Origin: Botryllus schlosseri
Lineage: Eukaryota
Length of the DNA: 64,000 nucleotides
Assembly (NCBI GenBank): GCA_051294905.1
Contig: CM119372.1
Span: forward strand, 30,256,001 to 30,320,000
Direction: 5' to 3'
The notes under the pieces were generated by a model. It saw nothing but the letters and a program-made list of their open reading frames with translations. It was not told where the DNA came from and did not search any database. Both the position numbers and the translations under genes were made by a program. This document shows positions 8,465 to 48,612 of this stretch, piece after piece (position 1 is the first letter of the stretch; each line of letters starts with the position of its first letter).

Positions 8465-9604
8465 CTATTTTGGTGGCTTTTGGCCCATATCACTCCACGC
8501 TTTCTTCGTGAATAGATTTGACGATTTGATATTTCTTGTTAATGCTCCCCCTATATTCATTCCGGGCAATTGCCCAACCCCTCCTTTCCGTCCAACCGGA
8601 ATAAGCATGATGGTACCGCTGGCGGGCTTGTAGGCGTGCATTTTACTCCCTTTAATAGCCGCTGCGATGTTCTTGGCGACGACATCCACATGCGCCCACG
8701 CCGCAACCGCCGTCTTTTCTTCGTTTATGTCCACAATATCACCGAGTGCGAAGATGTTTTCAGTACCTTCCACGCGTAAGAACTTGTCGACTTTTATCAA
8801 GCCATTGTCATTCACAGCGCTTCCGAGAGCTCCCTTAAACGACTCCGTGTTTGGCGTTCCGCCCGTGCAGCGTATCACCATGTCGCATCTGATCTCCTTT
8901 CCGCTGTCTGTTCTCACAACCTGGTCATTGACACATTTATTCAACTCAATGTCTTGGAGGTTACACACTCTTTCGTTAAGCATGAGTTCTATGCCCTTGC
9001 TCACCACGGTCTTTTTGAGTGACTTTTGCACTTTCTTATTCAGTCTGGTAGAGGCCAAGGTTTCATTCGGATGTATTAGAATAATTTTCTTATCAGGGTA
9101 GTCAGTCTTGAGCTCACCAGCCAACTCCACGCCGACCGGCCCGCCTCCGACACAAACGATAGTTCCTGATTCCTGTATACTAGTGTTAATGCCTGTGTAA
9201 TACTTTTTAGTGTCTTCTTCGGTTGCTTGTGGGTAGTCCATTGATAATTTAGCCGGAAACGAACTGCTGAAGCCAGTGGCAAGTACCAAATGAGAATAAG
9301 TTATTTCTTGGCCATTGTCAAGTGTTACTGAATTTCTACTCATATTAATTTGCGTCACTCGGCCTTTGACAAAACTGTCACCGAATGTAGTCCTCAGTGG
9401 GATCATGAGGCTCGGGACGAATGCCGGTTCCACCGTTCCTCTTAGAGCCCCCATGTTATGAAACATGAAGTCGTAGGGGTTGATGATTTTCATGCTTCCA
9501 GAACGAAGAAACTTCCGGCCGAATGCCGTTCCTCCGTAACCAGCACCTACGATAACAATGCTTGCATTTTCTGAGCGCGGTATACTTGATGCTCCACTAC
9601 CCAT
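8465..9604 (-). CDS. AIFM2: Ferroptosis suppressor protein 1 / AIF-M2-like NAD(P)H:quinone oxidoreductase, paralog A (379 aa, intronless CDS)
   Basis: N-myristoylation start MGSGAS; FAD motif VIVGAGYGG; ATG motif LVLATG; NADH motif VGGGPVGVE; FALGD; C-terminus AYKP..GRKGGVGQ..KS.NLF..W..MGQ.PP like human FSP1. Confidence 0.95.
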   Translation of the reverse strand: MGSGASSIPRSENASIVIVGAGYGGTAFGRKFLRSGSMKIINPYDFMFHNMGALRGTVEPAFVPSLMIPLRTTFGDSFVKGRVTQINMSRNSVTLDNGQEITYSHLVLATGFSSSFPAKLSMDYPQATEEDTKKYYTGINTSIQESGTIVCVGGGPVGVELAGELKTDYPDKKIILIHPNETLASTRLNKKVQKSLKKTVVSKGIELMLNERVCNLQDIELNKCVNDQVVRTDSGKEIRCDMVIRCTGGTPNTESFKGALGSAVNDNGLIKVDKFLRVEGTENIFALGDIVDINEEKTAVAAWAHVDVVAKNIAAAIKGSKMHAYKPASGTIMLIPVGRKGGVGQLPGMNIGGALTRNIKSSNLFTKKAWSDMGQKPPK

Positions 9605-23809: not shown

Positions 23810-24949
23810 CTACTTAGGTGGCTTTTGGCCCATGCTACTCCAAGTTTTACTTGTGAATAGATTTTGCGATTTCAATTGTTTTGTTAATGTCTGTCCGAGA
23901 TTCATGAAGGGCAATTGACCGACTCCACCATTCCGTCCTACAGGAATAAGCATGAGGGTGCTGGTCGCAGGCTTGTAAGCGTGCAATTTGCTCCCTTTCA
24001 TGGAGGCTGCGATGTTCTTAGCCACGATGTCCCTATGTCCCTCCGCAGCTAACACCATTTTTTCTTCATCTATGTCTACTATGTCACCGATAGCGAAGAT
24101 ATTCTCGGCACCTTCCACTCGTAAAAATTTGTCGACTTTTATCAAGCCATTGTCTTTCACCGCACCTCCGAGAGCGTCCTTGAAGGCAGCTGTATTTGGC
24201 CTACCACCGGTGCAGCGTATCACCATGTCGCATTTGATTTCCTTGTCACTCGTTGTTTTCACTACTTGGTCTTTGACGCATTTGTTCAACTCAAGATCTT
24301 GGAGGTTACTTACTCTTTCGTTAAGCATCAGCTCGATGCCCTTGCTCAACATCAACTTTTTGAGTGACTTCTGCACTTTCGAATTCACCCTGGCGGAGGC
24401 TAAGGTCTCATTCGCGTGAATGAGAATTATTTTCTTGTCCGGGTAATCAGTCTTCAATTCGCCGGCCATTTCCACTCCGACCGGTCCGCCTCCCACACAA
24501 ACGATAGTTCGGGATTCTTGAATGGTACTGTTGAGGTTCTTGTAATGTTTCTTGGTCTCTTCCTGAGTAGATTGAGGGTATTCCGGTGACAGTTGAGCTG
24601 GAAACGAGCCGCTAACGCCAGTGGCAAGTACCAAATGAGAATATGTGATTTCTTGGCCATTGTCCAGCGTCACCGAGTTTCTCTCTCTGTTAATTTGCGT
24701 CACTCTGCCTTGGACAAAGTTCTCCCCGAATGTATGTCTCAGTGGGATCATGAGACTCGGGACGAAGTCTGGCTCGACCGCTGCCCTTAGCGCCCCCACC
24801 GCATGGAACATGAAGTCGTAGGGATTGATAATTTTCACGTTTTCAGTGCTAAGAAGCTTCCGGCCGAGTGTGGCACCACCGTATCCCGCACCCACAATGA
24901 CAATGCTGGCATTTTCTGAACGGTGAATATTTGATGCTCCGTTACCCAT
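23810..24949 (-). CDS. AIFM2: Ferroptosis suppressor protein 1 / AIF-M2-like oxidoreductase, paralog B (379 aa, intronless CDS)
   Basis: Same motifs as paralog A (MGNGAS, GAGYGG, LATG, GGGPVGVE, AIGD); colinear without gaps. Confidence 0.95.
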   Translation of the reverse strand: MGNGASNIHRSENASIVIVGAGYGGATLGRKLLSTENVKIINPYDFMFHAVGALRAAVEPDFVPSLMIPLRHTFGENFVQGRVTQINRERNSVTLDNGQEITYSHLVLATGVSGSFPAQLSPEYPQSTQEETKKHYKNLNSTIQESRTIVCVGGGPVGVEMAGELKTDYPDKKIILIHANETLASARVNSKVQKSLKKLMLSKGIELMLNERVSNLQDLELNKCVKDQVVKTTSDKEIKCDMVIRCTGGRPNTAAFKDALGGAVKDNGLIKVDKFLRVEGAENIFAIGDIVDIDEEKMVLAAEGHRDIVAKNIAASMKGSKLHAYKPATSTLMLIPVGRNGGVGQLPFMNLGQTLTKQLKSQNLFTSKTWSSMGQKPPK

Positions 24950-37200: not shown

Positions 37201-39315
37201 AAAAAGAAAATGTATTGACAAACTCCCACTCATCAACAATTTATAACCCTTCTGATCAGCATGCTGTAGCCTGTTGACAACTGCCTTGTCAGTTTTCTGC
37301 ACTATTATAAGAGTAATTTGCAGATTAGGTCTTAAATTCTAAACAATAAGGTGGGCTCATCTCATTTTTAGTAAATTATTCAGTGTTACTGGTGAAGTTA
37401 CCTATTTGCAGAAGGTATTTCTGCCAACATTTGCTCAGGCTCTGTGTTTTCGAGGGGGGAGAGAGTATTTTATTTTAACTCAGTCTGGACTAGGTAGCAG
37501 ACAATACAGCAATAATGGCGATACAGAGTACACTTCACGATATTTGTTATGATAAGACTATGCTCATGCGGATTACTGAGCCTTTGACAGTGGAAAAACA
37601 ATATTTTAAGCATATGATGTTCCACCGATGGTCATAAATTACACGTCTTTGCATTTAAGCTAAAAATATGCTTAACAATATTCAGAACTGACGAAAGATT
37701 GCAGATAACTGGATAATTTTGCTAATTTCTGAGTATTTTTGTTTCGTTATGATTGGTAGTCAGTTTATTTCAATTGTAGATCATAAATCACTCAATAGTA
37801 TGGGCCCAAACTCCAAAAACTAAAGCAATGAGGTCTGGATATTCAAGTATTACGAGTTTTGAAATCACCAGAGTACTTTGTTGAACCCTAGTGGCCTTCT
37901 GAGTTGTGGGCATATAGGCATTAGGGCCAAATCTAACTTGGCTGAGTATAGTTCAATTACGTGAGGCCATTTTTGAAGACATGACATGTACAAATAATAG
38001 ATAGTGACTGTTTTGGTTGAAAACCTTCCACTAAGATAATATTGAGTGTGTGTGTGTGTGAGAGAGAGAGAGATGAGAACCGAAATGGTGGCATTTATCA
38101 ACTATTTTCTAGACCCACTATGAATAATTACCAGTAGAAGTAAACGGATGTGAAGACCAACTCCAAACAATGACCACCTATGTTGTAAGAGAACCGCCGT
38201 GCGTTTATTATAAAAAGGTATGGTAATCATCTTTAAAAAATACTTTATTTCTTTATTTGTTCATTTATCTATAGAAACTTGTTCGATATGATGAAGTTTT
38301 TTTGAAGCATTTCTTTTTATGGTATAAATATATTTCTTGAGCTTGGGCATAGAGCCGATATTACGGTGTTCGCTGCTTGGGGGTATAGTGCCTGGTATCG
38401 GCCAGCGGAACCGTCTATTGCGCGACCCAATAGTAACCCTTTTTCATTAAAACCGTAGAACATCTTAAGAATCACCTATGAAAATGAATTCTTACCTTGT
38501 TGGACAGCATCCAACCGCAAAGTGATGTGAAATTGTAATTATGTATATAAGGTATATATTTGTGTGAGTCGTACGTTTGTCCCTACCTTATGGGGTTGGT
38601 AATGTAGTAATGAGGTATATATGAAGTAGGTTGTGAGGAAATCTCATTTTTTGACACCCATGGTTACGCGAGTAGACGCTGCATTTCAACCACGATAGGA
38701 AGGAAGGAGGGACAAATATATCGTCGCAAAACAATGTATATAAAGTATAAGTGTTACAGTATGTATATATAAGCACCCACGAAAAAAATTGATAAAAGAA
38801 TTTGAAAAAAATTAAACACTTGCGGCGGATGAAACATACAATAAGGAAATTTGCCATGTATAAATATAGTAATATATAAAACGAATATATTATGATAAAA
38901 TGACCCTATGGGTTAACAAATTGTTATCTAACATAACTTAGATAGGATATGAAGTTGGAGTCGGACTTGGGATTGGATTTGGGCTCGGAATCGAATTCAG
39001 AGCCCGACGTGAATCATGTGATCTGAAAACTTTTCGTGTATAAATTTATGATTAATTTACACCAATTATGAAATATTAGTAGTGATAACATGTGTCCACG
39101 ATTACGCTGCAAGGAATTCGAGATCGAGCACTCAGTCTGGGTACCACAAAAATATATGTCTCTCGATCAAGGACTGAAATCGCTGAGATCACTAAGATTC
39201 CTGATGATGACACATACGTTATCAGGAGTATCAGAGTATCTGTGTGACATTGGCCGATGAGTCTAATTTAAGCTCCGCCATTGGAAACAATGATATGACT
39301 TCGCCACTGGTGACA

Positions 39316-40099
39316 GCACAGGACTGGAAATGCTAGATTATCCAGAGAAGCCTGGAAGACTAAATTAATAGGCACAGGACTGGAAATGATAGATTATCCA
39401 GAGAAGCCTGGAAGACTAAATTAATAGGCACAGGACTGAAAATGATAGATTATCCAGAGAAGCCTGGAAGACTAAATTAATAGGCACAGGACTGGAAATG
39501 ATAGATTATCCAGAGAAGCCTGGAAGACTAAATTAATAGGCACAGGACTGGAAATGCTAGATTATCCAGAGAAGCCTGGAAGACTAAATTAATAGGCACA
39601 GGACTGGAAATGATAGATTATCCAGAGAAGCCTGGAAGACTAAATTAATAGGCACAGGACTGGAAATGCTAGATTATCCAGAGAAGCCTGGAAGACTAAA
39701 TTAAAAGGCACAGGACTGGAAATGCTAGATTATCCAGAGAAGCCTGGAAGAATAAATTAATAGGCACAGGACTGGAAATGCTAGATTATCCAGAGAAGCC
39801 TGGAAGACTAAATTAATAGGCACAGGACTGGAAATGCTAGATTATCCAGAGAAGCCTGGAAGACTAAATTAATAGGCACAGGACTGGAAATGCTAGATTA
39901 TCCAGAGAAGCCTGGAAGACTAAATTAATAGGCACAGGACTGGAAATGCTAGATTATCCAGAGAAGCCTGGAAGACTAAATTAATAGGGACAGGACTGGA
40001 ATGCTAGATTAACCAGAGAAGCCTGGAAGACTAAGTTAATGGGCACGGGACTAAAAATGCTAGATTTTTCAGAGAAGCCTAGAAAACTAAATTGATAGG
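39316..40099. repeat. 56-bp tandem array, 14 copies
   Basis: Unit GCACAGGACTGGAAATGCTAGATTATCCAGAGAAGCCTGGAAGACTAAATTAATAG at exact 56-bp spacing from 39316; last two copies decayed. Confidence 0.97.
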
Positions 40100-40714
40100 G
40101 CTGACTGATAAAGTTTTAGGGTACACTCAATGATTATAGGCATCCCTATCTGGTTTAAATAAACTATGTTTATTAAAGAAATAATATATAACCTTAATAA
40201 ATAGATATATATGATAGCCTATATGTGTGGTAATAATGATGTATATACAATCGGAATATAATAGTATGGTAATTAGGTTAGAAAAGACCCTAGAACACAT
40301 AGGAAAGTGTACTACAAATAATATGATCTGAAAAATGGCAAATAAATTGGCCCCATCCACACATTTGTTTTCCGAAACAGATGTGTCGATGATCAAGAAC
40401 CACGTTAGTCATAGGTCCGCCCTGTCGACACATTCGTTTTACGAAGCGGGTGTGTCCACCGTTTGTTATATCGATATCTGTACATGATTTGGGACAATAT
40501 CATTTTAACGAGTTAATTTTTGTGCTATAGACGTAGGCATAAATTGCGTCATGAAGTACAAGTGTACATTCTCATTTTCGAAATTATAAGACAGATCAAA
40601 TACGATATCAAGATATTCTACACACCCGTGTAGTTAAGCTATCGTATTAAGCGATGACGGACATATTAATTCATTCCGCACGAGTTTGTCGAAAGCCGGC
40701 TCCGTCAAGCACTA

Positions 40715-41047
40715 ATGTACCGAGAGGACAACGAGTTATACAAGAAGATGGAATCACCACTCCACGATATCGCGATTCTCCTGGACAAAACGGCACCTAT
40801 ATTCCACCTTGCAATCGCCGAAATAGAAACGCAAATACGCGTCGCTCGAACCAGATTGTCAGAGGAAGATGCTAAGAGGATACAGTTGGACAACATAAGA
40901 TTTAGCAGAAGACACATAGAAAGGAGCCACCAGCAGACGATGAAATATTCATTTCACTGTGAACGATGTCGTACAAGACCCTTTGATACTACTCGATATA
41001 GTGCCAGTCGATTCAAATACACAGACTGCGCAACAGTCAAAGAGTAG
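40715..41047 (+). CDS. Helical 110-aa ORF, possibly the frameshifted N-terminal part of the RING gene
   Basis: Open frame with coiled-coil-like IAEIETQIRVARTRLSEEDAKR; overlaps the RING ORF, which lies in the +1 frame. Confidence 0.4.
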   Translation: MYREDNELYKKMESPLHDIAILLDKTAPIFHLAIAEIETQIRVARTRLSEEDAKRIQLDNIRFSRRHIERSHQQTMKYSFHCERCRTRPFDTTRYSASRFKYTDCATVKE

Positions 41048-41306
41048 GCTGGGCAACTCTGTTTATGCTAGAAACAGAATGGGGACGCCATCAATATTAG
41101 AAATAGCATATGTTGAAGAAATTGCTGAGAATCTGATGGTCATACAAGAAACCATACTTTGCAAACAATACAAAAATAATAGGAGCGAAATTACCCTGAT
41201 CCCCTGTGGACATCTGGGTCTGTGTCAAGAATGTTCGTCCGATGCTGAGCGCTGCATATTCTGCTATGGGAAAATATCGCAAAAGATCAAAGTGTATGGA
41301 GCTTGA
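40959..41306 (+). pseudogene. C-terminal IAP/Mdm2/neuralized-type C3HC4 RING, second Cys replaced by Tyr
   Basis: CKQY-x9-PCGH-x2-LC-x2-C-x6-C-x2-C..I..KIKVY*; TAC is one base from TGC. Confidence 0.75.
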
Positions 41307-42204: not shown

Positions 42205-42314
42205 TTTTCGGCAGGATAGGCCGTCACATGAATTATATGTGTAAACCAACCTTGGAGCTGCTTTTCGGCAGGACAGGCCGTCGCATGAATTATATGCGTA
42301 AACAAACCTTGGAG
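42205..42314. repeat. Two-copy 57-bp direct repeat
   Basis: TTTTCGGCAGGAYAGGCCGTCRCATGAATTATATGYGTAAACMAACCTTGGAG at 42205 and 42262. Confidence 0.9.
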
Positions 42315-42699
42315 TATTGAGAATGTTTAATAATCGTGCATGTTGATGAATAGGTTCAGATAAAACTTGTAATATAATTGAAGCGTGTTTACCAATTTGA
42401 TCGGGTTTAACACATAGAGACCTCATTCATCTTTGCATGATTAATTGATTGGAGTATTTGGTTGTATTAAGATTTAGCTTACTAGTTATACCAGTGTAGT
42501 TTTAAGTTCTGGACCTGGAGGTCATTGTCTGATTGGATCCAGCTGCTGCTACCCTTACCACTGCTTCGATCACCATTTGTGGATGCTACAAGGTCACAAC
42601 ATCAACACAGATAGGGAAAACCAACACTGTGAAGTAAAATCGAACCAAGTGTGGACTCTCGCAGTAACAAGCGTTGCTGGAGCTGCACTATAAACGTAC

Positions 42700-42720
42700 T
42701 GGAGGCACCAAGCTGGGATT
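42700..42720 (+). promoter_or_regulatory. Primer-binding site complementary to the tRNA-Thr(AGU) 3' end
   Basis: TGGAGGCACC(AA)GCTGGGATT versus the recalled reverse complement of vertebrate tRNA-Thr-AGT plus CCA, TGGAGGCACCGCTGGGATT; 2-nt bulge; 440 nt before gag. Confidence 0.7.
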
Positions 42721-42751
42721 ATTACTTCCGGTGTAGCACGTTGACCTATAA

Positions 42752-42961
42752 ATGTGTTCAAAGACGACCATCGTTAAAACTGCATTGGTCGTGGCCCTGA
42801 TTGCGTCTGTAATTTCATTGTTAGTTACGTTGTCACCAGTATATCTACATTTGGTACCGGGGTTTTCTTCAACTACAGTTCCGATTGGAAACGGAAGACC
42901 TAACAACGGAGTTACAACATCGTCCCCAACTCTTATTGGCTCGCAAAACATATCTGCATGA
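42752..42961 (+). CDS. ORF0: N-terminal signal/anchor plus Ser/Thr-rich tail (69 aa; the frame stays open 52 more codons after TGA)
   Basis: Hydrophobic ALVVALIASVISLLVTL; frame reopens to TAA at 43118-43120. Confidence 0.4.
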   Translation: MCSKTTIVKTALVVALIASVISLLVTLSPVYLHLVPGFSSTTVPIGNGRPNNGVTTSSPTLIGSQNISA

Positions 42962-43141
42962 CGCCAATTTATCATTACTAAAGACTCGCTTTCTAAACTT
43001 TTGGAGTTCGAGACTAACGACCACAACTCATCACTCGGAACAACACCGCGGCCTACCTTGGACGACCCGACCATCTCCAGCGTAAAGCAGGCCCTCGAAA
43101 ACTCTACTACGGGTCTATAAATCAAATCTATTACTATTGCC

Positions 43142-46087
43142 ATGCGAAGAATCTTGAAACTATTTAAAAAGAAGAAACCAACGGAGGCATCGGCGGAGCT
43201 AAAGCAGGGAATCCGACTGCTTAAATATACCCAAAAGCGTCACGAAGATTTGCGAGACCACGAGAGGCAATACGCTAAAGATGTGGCCGACCAGACAAGA
43301 GTCCTACAGGAGGTCAAAACGACCCTGCCTGAGGCAGTGAAGGAGCTGGAAAAAGCAAGAAAAGACGTCCGGCGGGCTCAAGCTGACCTGAAGGCCGTTT
43401 GTGACGCCACTTCAAAAATTACTAGAAAGGTTTCCCCTGACGTATTAAACGAGATCTTGCAGACTGAATTCGAGCTGGGTAAAGCCTATACGCAGGTGGT
43501 AGGAGAGAAACCGCCTCCTCCTTCCGCCCTGGCTGTCGTACCCTCAGCGCCTCTCCCGGCCTATGATCCACCAGCTATCCGTATGGTCAGGGAGACTCAA
43601 CCTATGCCCACCTTCACCGTGAAAAAGGGGCTGCATTGTCATACAGTAACGGCGGTCTACCCTACGCACCCAGACGCGAAGGCTGATGCCCCATCTCGAC
43701 CGACACCGGTTGCCCGTTCACTGATGGCTCCAATCTTTAGAACAAAAGGGAATATGCACCCGGCGATGAAGACCAAAGATGCTGCTAACACGCCCATGGC
43801 ATATTGGACACCTACGGGAGTGGCGACAGGAGGACCGATGAGACTGGAACGCGAAACAGACTCTGAATTGGACAGTAAACATCTGCCCTCATTCCGGAAA
43901 CTGGTGTCGAGATCTCGAGATGCGAAGGGTCAGCGGCGGGACATTGACAAGTTGGGTGATGCTGGGACACGAAGTAGTCGGGCAAGAAAGTCGCCGAGCG
44001 ACGCTGAGCACGTCATTTTCCGTGGAGAAGGGGAGGAGTATGATGAACGAGACTCGGAGGGTCAACCAGAAGATTCTGATTCTGAAAGTGCGACGACATC
44101 CCGACTGCAGAGGCTTGTACAGCAAATGGAATCCACACAGGACACCCTCCGGGAAGCTACTCGAAATGCTTTCCTTGGAGATAGTGGCGCTTCCCGAGAA
44201 ATTCTCCGTGGTCCTGAGTATTACGATGCGGGCTATCTTCCAAATGGCCGGGGGAATCCTGGAATGCCGCGTTTCGCATCTACTCCAGATGACAGTGATG
44301 ATGGCCGCCCAATTCAGCCGCTCTCGCGACAGATGGAGGTAATAGTAAACCCAACGCTAACTGCACCTGTTAGATTTCAGTCCGAAAAGGAAACGATACA
44401 GTTGATAATGGATCCGGGGGACATGCCTCTTCTCAAATGGATGGAGAACACAATGAGGCGAATTCACCACGGTGAAGGTAATACTGATGCTGATATAATA
44501 TTGATGAATGCAATGCAAAAGAAATTGAAGAATGCGGGGCGTTACAAACAAGCTGATCAACTTGGAAACTTCTTCAACACAAACTCAGGAAACGCCAGCT
44601 GGGAATCCGTTATGAGGTCGCTATCACTTTCCAACCCGCAAGGAATTGTGAACAATGAAAGAATTCTCAACGATTTCCGAAGAAATTATCATTGGGAAGA
44701 TGAACCCCTTCCTCTACTTAACAGCGCCCTGAAACCACTAGAGATAGACATGGACGATCTAGTTTTGGATAATCCGGACGGGCTGCGACTCTTCCGCAAT
44801 TTGAGACAGCAGCTGCCGGAAGCACTCAGGTTGATTATTCGAGGGTGGGAAGAACACACCTGGCGGAAAGTCGCAGAAGAACTACAACTGTTCTGGAATT
44901 CGGAATTCCAAGATGAACAGGAATCGAGTCCGACGTCTCAGAGAACCCGAAGAACGCAGAAGAACGAGTCGCCCTTGCCGCCTGTACATATCTATAATGT
45001 ACAGCCAGCTGGGCCTGTGGTACATAGCTATCCGACTCACCCTAACGGAGATGGACAACGGGAAATACCTCTACAGCCTACTTCCTCGTCATCACATCTT
45101 CCGCCGGAATTCGACGCAACGCCACCTCGACCTCCCAGAATCATCCCTTTACAGCCTATCAAGAATATAGGACAGGTTACACAACTACGCCGAAATCCTG
45201 TTCGCAACGCAAGATTAAACCGGCCCCCTACTAACGTATCGAGTGGTATCGAGCCAGGCAGACGAGCGCAAACTACTAGGAAAATGCTGGAACGAAAACA
45301 GAATGTACAAGGCGCCTCTGCCGGACCCGATACCCAACCTCTACATATTTCAGGGTCAGCACAATCCGGTCAACAACCAGGAACTTCAAGCCAAAGAAGC
45401 CCACGAACGGAAGGAACACAAGATTCTGGAGTGGGACCAGATAATACGCAAATCACTCCGTCAAACAGTCAGGAGGCTCGCCACATCGCGGAAAGCCAAG
45501 GTGAGAGGTACAATTTCCTTAGAAATGGTAATATATTTGCCCCATTAGGTTTGTATTTGAATCCTTCCCAGGGCCAGGCCCTTTCGGTATGTTATTATTG
45601 TAAGGCTCCCGGACACCAATCCCGGAATTGCATTGCCAAGTTTATCCTTTGGCTAAACAATGAGGTACTCTCTAGAGATAGCGAATTGGGGTGGGCAATC
45701 CGTAAACGGGTCCGACCGGTACCGCAGCGTATTAAGGAATCCGCTGAACGCAACTGGCGTCCGTTCCTTACTACCCATGGATTATTGACGATTTCAGACC
45801 TTGATCGGTATCTCATATCCCATGGTTCTCCCCCGTTGGCAGAAAGAACGAATCTATGTGAGGCCTATTATGATAGTATACCTAAAAACAGAGATAGAAC
45901 CCACTGGCACGATAGGGGCCAATGGGGTCCCAGGGGGCCACCCGCGAATCCAATTCCTAATAACGGCCAAGTAAACTGGATTGCGCCTTCATATAGACAA
46001 GAGCCGCGCCAATATGCCACCTCTTTCTGGACAGATGAGGAATTAGAACAAGGCTTACGCGTTTCAAAAAACGGTTGGGGGCGCTGA
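43142..46087 (+). CDS. gag: Gag-like polyprotein (981 aa)
   Basis: Basic N-terminus and coiled coil; PSAP at aa 134-137; helical Trp-containing capsid-like block at about aa 420-590; CYYCKAPGHQSRNC (CX2CX4HX4C) at 45590-45631. Confidence 0.85.
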   Translation: MRRILKLFKKKKPTEASAELKQGIRLLKYTQKRHEDLRDHERQYAKDVADQTRVLQEVKTTLPEAVKELEKARKDVRRAQADLKAVCDATSKITRKVSPDVLNEILQTEFELGKAYTQVVGEKPPPPSALAVVPSAPLPAYDPPAIRMVRETQPMPTFTVKKGLHCHTVTAVYPTHPDAKADAPSRPTPVARSLMAPIFRTKGNMHPAMKTKDAANTPMAYWTPTGVATGGPMRLERETDSELDSKHLPSFRKLVSRSRDAKGQRRDIDKLGDAGTRSSRARKSPSDAEHVIFRGEGEEYDERDSEGQPEDSDSESATTSRLQRLVQQMESTQDTLREATRNAFLGDSGASREILRGPEYYDAGYLPNGRGNPGMPRFASTPDDSDDGRPIQPLSRQMEVIVNPTLTAPVRFQSEKETIQLIMDPGDMPLLKWMENTMRRIHHGEGNTDADIILMNAMQKKLKNAGRYKQADQLGNFFNTNSGNASWESVMRSLSLSNPQGIVNNERILNDFRRNYHWEDEPLPLLNSALKPLEIDMDDLVLDNPDGLRLFRNLRQQLPEALRLIIRGWEEHTWRKVAEELQLFWNSEFQDEQESSPTSQRTRRTQKNESPLPPVHIYNVQPAGPVVHSYPTHPNGDGQREIPLQPTSSSSHLPPEFDATPPRPPRIIPLQPIKNIGQVTQLRRNPVRNARLNRPPTNVSSGIEPGRRAQTTRKMLERKQNVQGASAGPDTQPLHISGSAQSGQQPGTSSQRSPRTEGTQDSGVGPDNTQITPSNSQEARHIAESQGERYNFLRNGNIFAPLGLYLNPSQGQALSVCYYCKAPGHQSRNCIAKFILWLNNEVLSRDSELGWAIRKRVRPVPQRIKESAERNWRPFLTTHGLLTISDLDRYLISHGSPPLAERTNLCEAYYDSIPKNRDRTHWHDRGQWGPRGPPANPIPNNGQVNWIAPSYRQEPRQYATSFWTDEELEQGLRVSKNGWGR

Positions 46088-46108
46088 TTGATCCGGTAAA
46101 TCAGCTCC
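46066..46108 (+). promoter_or_regulatory. -1 programmed ribosomal frameshift signal
   Basis: A_AAA_AAC (46066-46072) in gag phase; after a 5-nt spacer, hairpin GGGG(C)GCUGAUU-loop-AAUCAGCUCCC; the -1 frame is open into ORF2. Confidence 0.85.
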
Positions 46109-48612
46109 CTGACACAATATTACCCCAACATGTTAAAACTGTACATAATGCCTCGTTACCTTTGTTTACATTCCTTGATTCACCGGACAACCCCCTACAA
46201 CCGTATTTCGCAGAATTATTCGGTGGGCAACTTTTATACCTAGTGGATACAAACACAGACACTAAATTTCTAGCCGATACTGGCAGTATCCCCAATTTGA
46301 TTATGAAAAGCGTAGTAAAAAATAAATATCCGAGAAGCTGGGCTGAACGACAGCCACTTGATATGAAATTGCGCGGAATAGGAGGCTCGTCCCGAGTCGA
46401 CTCTCTAGTAATAGTACCTCTTGACGGATTGCAAGTTCCATTTGCAACTGGTAAAGGAGTTCCTCTTAATATAGTGGGGCTAAAATGGATTGACAAAGTA
46501 CAACAATTACCGAGTATAGATACTGAATTTAAAACTCCATCTACTGTTAATGAAGAATTGTCATTGGCAACACTACATAGTATGGCTTTACGCGATAAAA
46601 AGGAAGGAACCAGAATTGAAAACAGTCCTTGCAAAACTGTGACCAAGGATGGGTTGGTGAAAGCTGCAGAACAGACAAGCGTCGAGACGGCAAGGGCCGC
46701 TGATGCTGGCGTCGAAGTGGCAAGGGCCGCTGACGCATACGTTGGGTCGGTAAACACCGCTGACGTTACAATAGAAAATAGAGACTCTTTAGGTGCCGAG
46801 CAAGGAAGGCCTGCTGACACCTGCCAAAATCGCGCCGAGCGAGGAAGTCCCGCTGACGCAAATGGAGTGCAAACTAATGAAGGAGGCTCCAATGATGAAG
46901 GCAAGATGAGCGTCGAGTTGGCAAGGGCCGCTGACGCAAACGTTGGGTCGGTTAACACCGCTGGCGTTACAATAAATCAAAGAGACTCTTTAGGTGCCGA
47001 GCCAGGAAGTCCTGCTGACACCAGTCTAATTCGTGCCGAGCGAGGAAGTCCCGCTGACGCGAATGGGGGTCAAACTAATCAAGAAGACCCCGAGGATGTA
47101 GGCAAAGCTGCTTGTCCAGATGACGGTAAGGCATCAGTGCGGAATGATCCCACCACAACCGCCGTCATGCCTACTTCACTCAATAATAGTTCCAACGCAG
47201 CTACTACTCATTATCCGGATATGAGTCCGGATGTGGCTAAAGAGGAGTCTGGAGATTTTAGGATGCAAGTCTCTCCAGAACAAGGGCCCCCGTCGGATCA
47301 AAGCTCCGGCGGCGTGACGTTAGGCGTGGGCACGCGCCGAGATCAGAGGTTAACACGAATAGGTAGGGAAGTCCCGCTGACGGAAAAAACCCTCGCCCTC
47401 TCCCCACCAACACCAGAACCCCGATTACCGCATAAGCCAAACAGAAAGGTAAACGGTCCGGTAAACACGTACGTCTTACAAGAGGGAACCAGTCCAGAGG
47501 TAAAAACTGAAGTTGAGCTCCTGTGCGCACAATCAGTAGAGCTAGCAAAATGGCCATATAAGCCCCTTGATTCAGCTACGCCAGAAAATACCATTATTGC
47601 CGACAACGTATGGCCAGAGGTCTATAAACCTTTTGCGACTGAGCGGGAAGATCTGCCATGCCATCTTAGCGCGCCCCAATCTATGAAGTACCAGTGCGAC
47701 AGGGAACTAGAATACCCATCAACTAAGCCATTTGTCTCTGGTCCCTCTAATTTGAAAGGGGGAAGCCATACCAAGGATTTACAAGAAGCTGTAACCGTGT
47801 GGTCAGCAAATATGGTGTCATGCGTGATGAAGCCAATAACGGAGAAGTACCAGCAGCACATAAAAGAACATGGCTGGGCTGATAGGAAAAATACAACAGC
47901 TATGGAGGTCTACATTTCTCTCGGAACAATGCAAGTATTCACGTCTGATGGATTGTCCAGATCATATTGGGTAGAAATGGCGGTAGGAGATGACGATCCC
48001 CGTGCTGCTAATCCGAAAAGGAAAGAAGTAACCCATATTTTGTGTGAATCTCAACAAGAAAGGGTGCAACGAACATTGATGTACCATTACAGGCATGCAG
48101 AGTGCCAAGACTCGACAAATGGATACCACCAATGGGAAAGCATCCATGCGATTGTACAAGGCAAACTGAAATTAAATTTTGAAATGACCGAAATAAAAGA
48201 CGTCTTGATAAGTTGCGATAGGGCTGTAGTCACAAGCTACGGTCTGGCCGCGCCACACCGACATACGAAAGGGTCGACTCCCCCCTACAAGGAGCACGGA
48301 GGTGACGGTATGCTATGTCACATGGCGACTGAATTGAACGCAAAAGTTTTCATGAATGAGGAGATCAAAAGGATGAACAGAAAGTTTGTTCATCCTAGCA
48401 AGTCAAAGACGACAAAGATGCTAGGCCGGAAGATTGTTATCAGCGTGAATGCGGCGTATCTGAAGACTGAAGGGGTGAAATTGCTACAATCTCCAAATCC
48501 CGATGTTGTGATTGTGTTGAACTTTGAGGAATTTGGCTGCACAATGAATTCAAACGGACAAAATCTAAACCCAGTAATTAGATATATGCTGAATCAGCAG
48601 GAGTGCATTTAA
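46075..48612 (+). CDS. Frameshift ORF2: retropepsin, repetitive linker, unknown domain and Tpt1/KptA-like 2'-phosphotransferase
   Basis: FLADTGS (DTG at 46276), flap GIGG, NIVGLKWI. C-terminal 190 aa has YRH, DRA, HRHT, LCHMAT, RMNRKFVHPS and VISVNAAYLKTEGVKLLQSPN. No YxDD or DDE motif. Confidence 0.8.
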   Translation: MGALIDPVNQLPDTILPQHVKTVHNASLPLFTFLDSPDNPLQPYFAELFGGQLLYLVDTNTDTKFLADTGSIPNLIMKSVVKNKYPRSWAERQPLDMKLRGIGGSSRVDSLVIVPLDGLQVPFATGKGVPLNIVGLKWIDKVQQLPSIDTEFKTPSTVNEELSLATLHSMALRDKKEGTRIENSPCKTVTKDGLVKAAEQTSVETARAADAGVEVARAADAYVGSVNTADVTIENRDSLGAEQGRPADTCQNRAERGSPADANGVQTNEGGSNDEGKMSVELARAADANVGSVNTAGVTINQRDSLGAEPGSPADTSLIRAERGSPADANGGQTNQEDPEDVGKAACPDDGKASVRNDPTTTAVMPTSLNNSSNAATTHYPDMSPDVAKEESGDFRMQVSPEQGPPSDQSSGGVTLGVGTRRDQRLTRIGREVPLTEKTLALSPPTPEPRLPHKPNRKVNGPVNTYVLQEGTSPEVKTEVELLCAQSVELAKWPYKPLDSATPENTIIADNVWPEVYKPFATEREDLPCHLSAPQSMKYQCDRELEYPSTKPFVSGPSNLKGGSHTKDLQEAVTVWSANMVSCVMKPITEKYQQHIKEHGWADRKNTTAMEVYISLGTMQVFTSDGLSRSYWVEMAVGDDDPRAANPKRKEVTHILCESQQERVQRTLMYHYRHAECQDSTNGYHQWESIHAIVQGKLKLNFEMTEIKDVLISCDRAVVTSYGLAAPHRHTKGSTPPYKEHGGDGMLCHMATELNAKVFMNEEIKRMNRKFVHPSKSKTTKMLGRKIVISVNAAYLKTEGVKLLQSPNPDVVIVLNFEEFGCTMNSNGQNLNPVIRYMLNQQECI

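Follow-up and report, generated by a model that had tools for sequence, protein, structure and literature searches.

A Tpt1/KptA-family domain at the C-terminus of a retroelement Pol-like reading frame in the sea squirt Botryllus schlosseri

This analysis concerns a Gag-Pol-like locus in a 64,000-nucleotide (nt) stretch of Botryllus schlosseri DNA (contig CM119372.1, positions 30,256,001 to 30,320,000 of the forward strand; hereafter the window), in which the second of two overlapping open reading frames (ORFs), ORF2, resembles a retroelement Pol. Residues 660-815 of ORF2 were confirmed to be a member of the Tpt1/KptA family, and the region can be described with high confidence as the C-terminal domain of a retroelement Pol-like ORF2 that belongs to the Tpt1/KptA family of RNA 2'-phosphotransferases dependent on nicotinamide adenine dinucleotide (NAD+). 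It is a retroelement Pol with a new enzymatic module, an RNA 2'-phosphotransferase, from a rare sea-squirt family. An earlier note had proposed, from motifs aligned by eye, a Tpt1/KptA-like domain at the C-terminus of the frameshifted ORF2, flagging positions 48055-48535 (ORF2 aa 661-820, numbering from 46075), and had suggested a profile search and a structure prediction as checks; the results of both, given below, support it.

46075..48612, + strand: ORF2, Pol-like, 845 codons from the first TTG, in the -1 frame relative to ORF1
48052..48519, + strand: Tpt1/KptA-type RNA 2'-phosphotransferase domain, ORF2 aa 660-815, with a predicted N-terminal RNA lobe and C-terminal NAD+ lobe
48091..48096, + strand: codons of R673-H674, tetrad members 1 and 2, aligning to the RH dipeptide of Tpt1 structures
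48220..48222, + strand: codon of R716, tetrad member 3, equivalent to Arg62 of Pyrococcus horikoshii Tpt1 (PhoTpt1)
48319..48327, + strand: H749-M-A, the NAD-binding H-x-T motif with Thr replaced by Ala, from the family alignment
48379..48381, + strand: codon of R769, tetrad member 4, equivalent to PhoTpt1 Arg115

Identity and active site of the Tpt1/KptA domain

When the window sequence alone was compared with the 18,950 models of NCBIfam, only three matches were returned, every one of them an RNA 2'-phosphotransferase model, including NF002013 (E=2.2e-7, model positions 5-165 of 183). PF01885 (PTS_2-RNA) was the sole Pfam match (E=0.0098, 16.4 bits), and in a phmmer search of the PDB the best five matches were all Tpt1/KptA proteins, at E-values of 0.1-0.2. 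With the window domain as query, HMMER was run exhaustively against 1.84 billion representative proteins and recovered just 10 relatives. An exhaustive search was needed, as a word-indexed homolog search with ORF2 residues 600-845 gave no matches, the relatives being unannotated or located on short contigs. No relatives were found when JGI metagenome contigs and IMG/VR were scanned with the domain alignment; bacterial and archaeal genome contigs were left out of the contig scans, as the element is eukaryotic. Seven of the 10 relatives, each taken alone, passed the PF01885 gathering score, their homologous domains scoring 26.6-43 bits. The relative from Styela clava (ORF2 of locus L001) passed it at 38.2 bits (E=2e-9), and the C-terminus of this protein aligned with window aa 601-813 at 32% identity (BLASTP, E=1e-34).

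Further confirmation was seen with the use of a profile of the family, which matched 12 distinct Tpt1/KptA sequences in the PDB over nearly their full length (E 8.4e-15 to 1.8e-6), the best match to a Tpt1 structure (E=8.4e-15) spanning residues 5-162 of 177. Tpt1 enzymes pair a winged-helix RNA lobe with an NAD+ lobe of ADP-ribosyltransferase-like fold, the tetrad facing a single cleft. In an AlphaFold2 model based on the family alignment, the predicted local distance difference test (pLDDT) score was a moderate 64-87 in the core, with a mean of 58.8 when the flanks were included, and the 21 best Foldseek matches in the PDB were all Tpt1/KptA proteins (E from 1.7e-7, probability 1.00, 161-195 aligned columns). 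The weak Pfam and PDB scores obtained with the single window sequence would be in keeping with a chance resemblance, in which the motifs seen by eye reflect no homology. As every significant match, whether by profile or by fold, was to a Tpt1/KptA protein, this explanation was refuted and its probability is practically nil.

The catalytic tetrad of Tpt1 is Arg14-His15-Arg62-Arg115 in P. horikoshii (PMC10622864) and Arg18-His19-Arg68-Arg121 in the Clostridium enzyme (PMC6333775). In HMMER alignments, R673-H674, R716, and R769 of the window were aligned with Arg14-His15, Arg62, and Arg115 of PhoTpt1, for which the chain numbering of structure 8TFI agrees with that of PMC10622864 (Tyr74 at YGHS). 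The complete Arg-His-Arg-Arg tetrad proposed in the earlier note was therefore upheld by alignment of all four residues with the published catalytic tetrad. Its residue numbers (R673, H674, R716, H749, and R769) are exact when ORF2 is counted from 46075, and its spacings of 33 residues between R716 and H749 and 20 between H749 and R769 equal those of Arg62-His95-Arg115 in PhoTpt1. The choice of R716, from the 'K.R' motif, as the third Arg in preference to the Arg of 'IRA.QGHS' also proved correct, as Arg62 of PhoTpt1 lies 12 residues before Tyr74 of YGHS.

Conservation was counted by column in 13 family sequences, which are 22-35% identical to the window except for the close relative P0004, taking the sequences that cover each column as the denominator. 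Arg occupied the R673 column in 11 of 12 sequences (Gln in the other), and His the H674 column in 12/12; R716 (13/13), R769 (11/11), and the NAD-lobe His at H749 (12/12) were without exception. Near-invariance of the tetrad and of H749 across so diverged a family is the pattern expected from purifying selection on an active site, and, to judge from these sequences, the family enzyme is probably active. The H-G-T motif of Tpt1 touches the adenosine 2'-OH of NAD+ (PMC6333775). Across the family its Gly is replaced by Met, Leu, or Trp, and its Thr is kept in 10 of 11 sequences, the window being the lone exception, with Ala. All four tetrad residues, together with H730, H749, and H773, are present in the window copy.

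Gag-Pol-like organization and a lineage without detected integrase or long terminal repeats

In the ORF list of the window, a 5.5-kb stretch of the + strand consists of two long overlapping open frames, ORF1 and ORF2. Neither contains an internal stop or frameshift, with 1,826 codons open in total, and the remaining four frames of the same 5.5 kb hold 63-106 stops each; the window contains no Ns.

43142..46087, + strand: ORF1, Gag-like, 981 aa, from the ORF list and translation
45587-45631, + strand: CCHC zinc knuckle, ORF1 aa 816-830
46066..46072, + strand: -1 frameshift heptamer A AAA AAC, in the ORF1 register, 13 nt before the ORF1 stop codon
46074..46113, + strand: stem-loop, candidate frameshift stimulator, minimum free energy -20.2 kcal/mol, z = -2.2 versus shuffles
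46132..46572, + strand: putative retropepsin-like protease region with a D-T-G-S motif, D-T-G at 46276-46284
46679..47105, + strand: coding tandem repeats of 30-nt and ~200-nt units, from a repeat search

ORF1 is composed of an N-terminal coiled-coil-like region, a conserved all-helical central domain (aa ~400-600), a Pro-rich linker, the CCHC knuckle, and a conserved C-terminal domain. The zf-CCHC match to the knuckle (E=5e-4, 20.4 bits) falls just below the gathering score of 20.8. The central domain was predicted to be helical, but gave no capsid match in the PDB by sequence or by fold, and the designation of ORF1 as 'Gag' therefore rests on the knuckle, its position, and the frameshift. 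Homologs of ORF1 were P0001 and P0002 (Logan) and P0003 (S. clava LOC144432391), at 62%, 57%, and 37% identity, respectively, and its relatives included several diverged paralogs within one sample.

The frameshift signal has a counterpart in the Styela relative, where a heptamer G GGA AAC stands in register at the homologous place (L001 12562-12568), and in both the window and the Styela relative the -1 frame is open from the heptamer into ORF2. The counterpart stem-loop reaches -21.3 kcal/mol (z = -2.1), and its 3' arm, CAGCUCCC, is common to both. Downstream of this signal, the block with the protease motif aligned with the N-terminus of the Styela ORF2 at 52% identity (BLASTP, E=2e-44); as no Pfam or PDB match was obtained for the region, the protease was assigned by motif and position only. 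Once translated, the tandem repeats form an insert of low complexity, rich in Ala, Asp, and Gly, that separates the protease region from the remainder of ORF2. At gathering thresholds, Rfam returned zero matches in the window, with no known ribozyme, tRNA-like, or frameshift family.

The arrangement of an intact member was apparent at S. clava locus L001, where the ORF1 homolog P0003 is located and the next frame is a 1044-aa ORF2. In L001, P0009/L002, P0007, P0014/L004, and P0015/L005, the domain order is a protease motif, RVT_1 (reverse transcriptase, RT), RT_RNaseH_2, and PTS_2-RNA, the last three sharing a single ORF in L001, P0009, and P0007 and, with weak matches, in P0014 and P0015. Relatives with protease-RT-RNase H-Tpt1 come from S. 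clava and three assemblies. The RNase H part of the family profile matched Ty3 RT/RNase H structures (E about 1e-8). Neither window ORF2 nor any of the close relatives yielded an integrase (rve) domain. When the Styela RT-RNase H served as query, rve was missing from all three of the closest proteins (42-48% identical), and the next-nearest Pols (≤27% identity) were ordinary Ty3/gypsy Pols, all with rve. Nor were long terminal repeats (LTRs) or other flanking repeats detected by seed search and word-7 blastn in the window (7 kb each side) or at L001, L002, L004, and L005. The Tpt1 domain, lying after RNase H, stands in the integrase position of ordinary Ty3/gypsy elements.

The best explanation of these observations as a whole, which we regard as very probable, is a small, deeply branching, Ty3/gypsy-related lineage, so far seen only in S. 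clava and in further assemblies and read sets. By its polymerase the lineage is related to Ty3/gypsy, yet two defining features of LTR retrotransposons, an integrase and LTRs, were not found in it. An IS1595-type DDE transposase was considered as a stand-in integrase and rejected, being present upstream in L001 and L003 but absent from the window, L004, and L005. Its block at L003 abuts a 5'-truncated, interrupted pol remnant and thus looks like a separate transposon, although the rejection is not firm.

Several relatives carry additional genes near the element. L004 (7242-18650) and L005 (7316-18500), both from ENA ERZ21736675, are paralogous and collinear over ~10-11 kb at 70-81% nucleotide identity, with gag and pol(-Tpt1) followed on the same strand by a CUB-domain ORF and two or three large ORFs (430-750 aa) without known domains. 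From this collinearity, the full-length unit of the lineage may be much larger than gag-pol. A homolog of these large ORFs (25-35% identical) is found upstream of gag-pol in S. clava (L001 378-4930) and in another assembly (L003 120-4151), in each case behind the IS1595/ISXO2-type DDE transposase gene, which is 42-44% identical between the two loci; the large ORF at L001 2408-4930 gave no PDB or Pfam identity. The L001/L003 block could represent a DNA transposon of its own that has one gene in common with the retroelement; alternatively, it could be part of a permuted or composite arrangement. At four long loci, one more large ORF was seen in the neighborhood of the element, sometimes on one side of gag-pol and sometimes on the other, and this could be a hint of permuted or composite units. 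At L002 (38-4508, ENA ERZ781364), a Gag-like ORF, a short middle ORF, and an RT-RNase H-Tpt1 ORF occupy three successive -1 frames, a layout that suggests either two frameshift sites (gag-pro-pol) or damage.

Other features were noted around the window locus. A 151-codon antisense ORF (42688-43143, - strand) ends exactly at the ORF1 start codon and has no Pfam match; it is probably a chance ORF. A tandem array with a 56-nt unit (39204-40119, ~16 copies, inner copies 96-98% alike) lies 3 kb upstream of ORF1, and a separate 53-nt doublet (42205-42314) lies 0.8 kb upstream. L001, L004, and L005 also have tandem arrays, 2-3.5 kb from their coding blocks, the sequences of which are mutually dissimilar. 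A short ORF with a C3HC4 RING finger (40959-41306, + strand; zf-C3HC4_3, E=5.5e-9) is probably a host-gene exon. Two intronless 379-codon ORFs on the same strand, 15 kb apart (8465-9604 and 23810-24949, both - strand), are pyridine nucleotide-disulphide oxidoreductases (Pyr_redox_2, E 1e-36 to 1e-38) and look like a tandem gene duplication.

Condition of the window copy and origin of the domain

Comparison of window ORF2 with the Styela ORF2 by BLASTP revealed three collinear conserved blocks. Two internal in-frame deletions relative to Styela were evident, and most of RT, including the catalytic box, and all of RNase H have been lost; accordingly, Pfam detected neither RVT_1 nor RNase H in window ORF2, both of which are present in the Styela relative. 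A similar loss of RT-RNase H was seen in P0008/P0004, from another read set (76-83% identical), which is split into two gene calls. As window ORF2 is without a working RT or RNase H, any RT-helping role of the domain would be a property of the intact members and not of the window locus alone.

A number of observations weigh against reading this locus as a retroelement Gag-Pol that ends in a Tpt1/KptA enzyme. The window copy has no RT and no RNase H, ORF1 gave no capsid match in the PDB by sequence or fold, and the PF01885 score of the window itself, at 16.4 bits, does not reach the gathering score of 26. The quality of the structural model is moderate (mean pLDDT 58.8), and its template modeling (TM) scores to Tpt1 structures are only 0.3-0.44, which we attribute, as an assumption, to this model quality and to mobility within the two-lobe architecture. 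Within the Tpt1 domain, the window matches 24 of 40 family-conserved columns (60%), compared with 65% for P0004 and 79-94% for most others, and it alone in the family has Ala for the Thr of HxT. Its identity to P0004 is 27/39 at family-conserved columns and 86/116 elsewhere, an equal divergence that suggests relaxed constraint on Tpt1 once RT had been lost. On this sequence evidence, activity of the window copy itself is doubtful.

One explanation of these defects is that the locus is a dead remnant, a decaying non-autonomous deletion derivative in which Tpt1 is an inactive fossil and the tetrad survives for lack of time. Deletion of RT and RNase H, retention of only 60% of the family-conserved columns, the change of the HxT Thr to Ala, the equal divergence from P0004 at conserved and non-conserved columns, and a Pfam score below that of every full relative are all consistent with this, and it is considered a substantial possibility, short of a probable one. 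It does not readily account for 1,826 codons that have stayed open although the domain differs from that of the closest relative at ~28% of its amino acids, nor for the intact frameshift signal and the intact tetrad, H730, H749, and H773.

The preserved coding capacity could alternatively be due to domestication, that is, a co-opted, PEG10-like Gag-protease-Tpt1 locus with Tpt1 in a host function. The window locus has no LTRs, integrase, RT, or RNase H, and nonetheless has retained two long ORFs (981 and 845 codons) as well as the slippery site, in register, and the stem-loop that goes with it, against 63-106 stops in the other frames of the same stretch; moreover, the RT-less form persists, with a similar RT-RNase H loss in the related copy from the other read set. 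However, a domesticated gene is argued against by the Tpt1 domain of the window lineage, which shows no excess conservation at family-conserved columns and has lost the HxT threonine, by the splitting of the related RT-less copy into two gene calls, and by the several diverged ORF1 paralogs in one sample, which suggest a repeat family rather than a gene present in single copy. Domestication was therefore judged unlikely.

It was also considered whether the domain could be a recent capture of host TRPT1, or an adjacent host exon included by accidental read-through. A TRPT1 gene is found in animals (PMC3400036), and an isolated S. clava member of the family, P0011, is named 'probable RNA 2'-phosphotransferase' by NCBI. 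P0011, however, behaves like the element domain and unlike a TRPT1 ortholog. The family profile scored archaeal and bacterial Tpt1 best (E 1e-11 to 8e-15) and in the PDB search gave no match by sequence to mouse or human TRPT1 at E≤1, while in Foldseek the mouse and human TRPT1 came last among the Tpt1 matches. As profile and fold both favor archaeal/bacterial Tpt1, and P0011 does the same, recent capture is not likely. Both forms are opposed by the position of the domain, which follows RNase H in the reading frame at an equivalent site even in relatives of just 22-35% identity. Taken together, host capture in either form is very improbable.

Proposed role of the domain and comparison with known systems

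A 2'-phosphate is the lesion left by 5'-phosphate (Trl1/plant-type) RNA ligation. Tpt1 is described in PMC6182162 and PMC12678800 as moving an RNA 2'-phosphate to NAD+ and, as an alternative activity, as ADP-ribosylating (capping) RNA or DNA at 5'-phosphate ends. Reverse transcription is hampered when an RNA ligation junction bears a 2'-phosphate, and Tpt1 has been used for its removal (PMC8782182). A 5'-phosphate RNA ligase pathway is present in at least one invertebrate chordate (PMC3400036).

In the mechanism proposed here, the domain would be made only as the tail of the Gag-Pol frameshift product, and hence in small amounts, and in intact members, being covalently joined to protease-RT-RNase H, it would travel with RT. 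It would use NAD+ to strip an internal or terminal 2'-phosphate from the template or primer RNA of the element, the presumed source of the phosphate being 5'-phosphate-type RNA ligation. Alternatively, and less likely, an ADP-ribose cap may be placed on 5'-phosphate ends of replication intermediates. The 2'-phosphate-clearing role specifically is put forward tentatively, as something the domain may do rather than as its probable function.

A more far-reaching version, which must be regarded as a long shot, is that the family is a new kind of integrase-less, LTR-less tunicate retroelement whose reverse transcription depends on 2'-phosphate-marked RNA, with the Pol-borne Tpt1 erasing the mark so that RT can pass. 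Template or primer could then, for example, be joined or circularized by a 5'-phosphate (Trl1/plant-type) RNA ligase. Such dependence on a 2'-phosphate mark is compatible with intact members that have no integrase or LTRs, with the conserved tetrad, and with the additional large ORF near the element at the four long loci, and, if true, would make Tpt1 a replication enzyme replacing the integrase/LTR strategy and not an accessory.

Retroelement Pols are made up of protease, RT, RNase H, and integrase, occasionally with a dUTPase, a chromodomain, or other extras. No paper describing a fusion of Tpt1/KptA/TRPT1 to a retroelement was found in the full-text literature, the coverage of which is incomplete, so that this is absence of evidence only, and a Ty3/gypsy survey from 2026 that covered metazoans, including tunicates, contains no mention of a Tpt1 fusion. 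There is a small chance that the lineage represents an entirely new kind of element. For the preferred reading, a Ty3/gypsy-related lineage with a Pol-borne Tpt1 domain, the significance is twofold. What Tpt1 does outside tRNA splicing in fungi and plants has long been puzzling, as noted in the Tpt1 papers; a Tpt1 active site kept by selection and fused to an RT points to a setting in which 2'-phosphates or 5'-phosphate ends matter for the copying of RNA into DNA, and the lineage provides a natural set of sequences in which to look for a Tpt1 substrate. In addition, the persistence of a Ty3/gypsy-like polymerase without integrase or LTRs prompts the question of whether elements of this kind propagate and, if they do, in what way.

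The cellular enzymes used for comparison were P. horikoshii Tpt1 (8TFI), Thermococcus KptA (9LD3/9LD4), Clostridium thermocellum Tpt1 (6E3A), and Runella Tpt1 (7KW8). The window domain is like cellular Tpt1/KptA/TRPT1 in profile family, predicted fold, tetrad of Arg-His-Arg-Arg, and Arg62-His95-Arg115 spacing, and like Tpt1/KptA in size (~160-180 residues) and in the coverage of both lobes. Unlike them, it is not free-standing but forms the C-terminal part of a frameshifted retroelement Pol, and its identity to solved Tpt1s is only ~15-22% (Foldseek). The cellular H-G-T is H-M-T in the family and H-M-A in the window copy, and the Lys located two positions ahead of the third tetrad Arg gives way to C, S, N, or G.

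Compared with Ty3/gypsy elements (Metaviridae; yeast Ty3, 7Q5B and 4OL8), the intact relatives share RT and RNase H of Ty3 type (RVT_1, RT_RNaseH_2), a Gag-like ORF containing a CCHC knuckle, a protease motif (D-T-G), and production of Gag-Pol by frameshifting. They differ in that no lineage member has an integrase, whereas the nearest other Pols all have rve, in that no LTRs were detected within 7-10 kb on either side and Tpt1 occupies the integrase position, and in an RT that is at most 27% identical to those of ordinary members. Pararetrovirus polymerases resemble the lineage, with its putative protease, in combining protease, RT, and RNase H without integrase and in occurring as integrated copies without LTRs. 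The match of the RNase H region to a pararetrovirus 'Enzymatic polyprotein' (8R0S) was weak (E=1.3e-4), and nothing else indicates an episomal virus; we know of no pararetrovirus-like agent with a Tpt1 domain.

PEG10-type domesticated genes keep Gag, protease, and the -1 frameshift, and the G GGA AAC slippery site of the Styela relative can be likened to that of such genes. The window locus resembles them in its Gag-like ORF1, its canonical X XXY YYZ slippery site, and its ORF2 with a putative protease, and in the absence of RT, integrase, and LTRs. No relationship by sequence was detected, although no named PEG10 match was tested. In contrast to PEG10-type genes, ORF1 of the window is three times longer than theirs, a Tpt1 domain forms the end of ORF2, and relatives with an intact RT exist.

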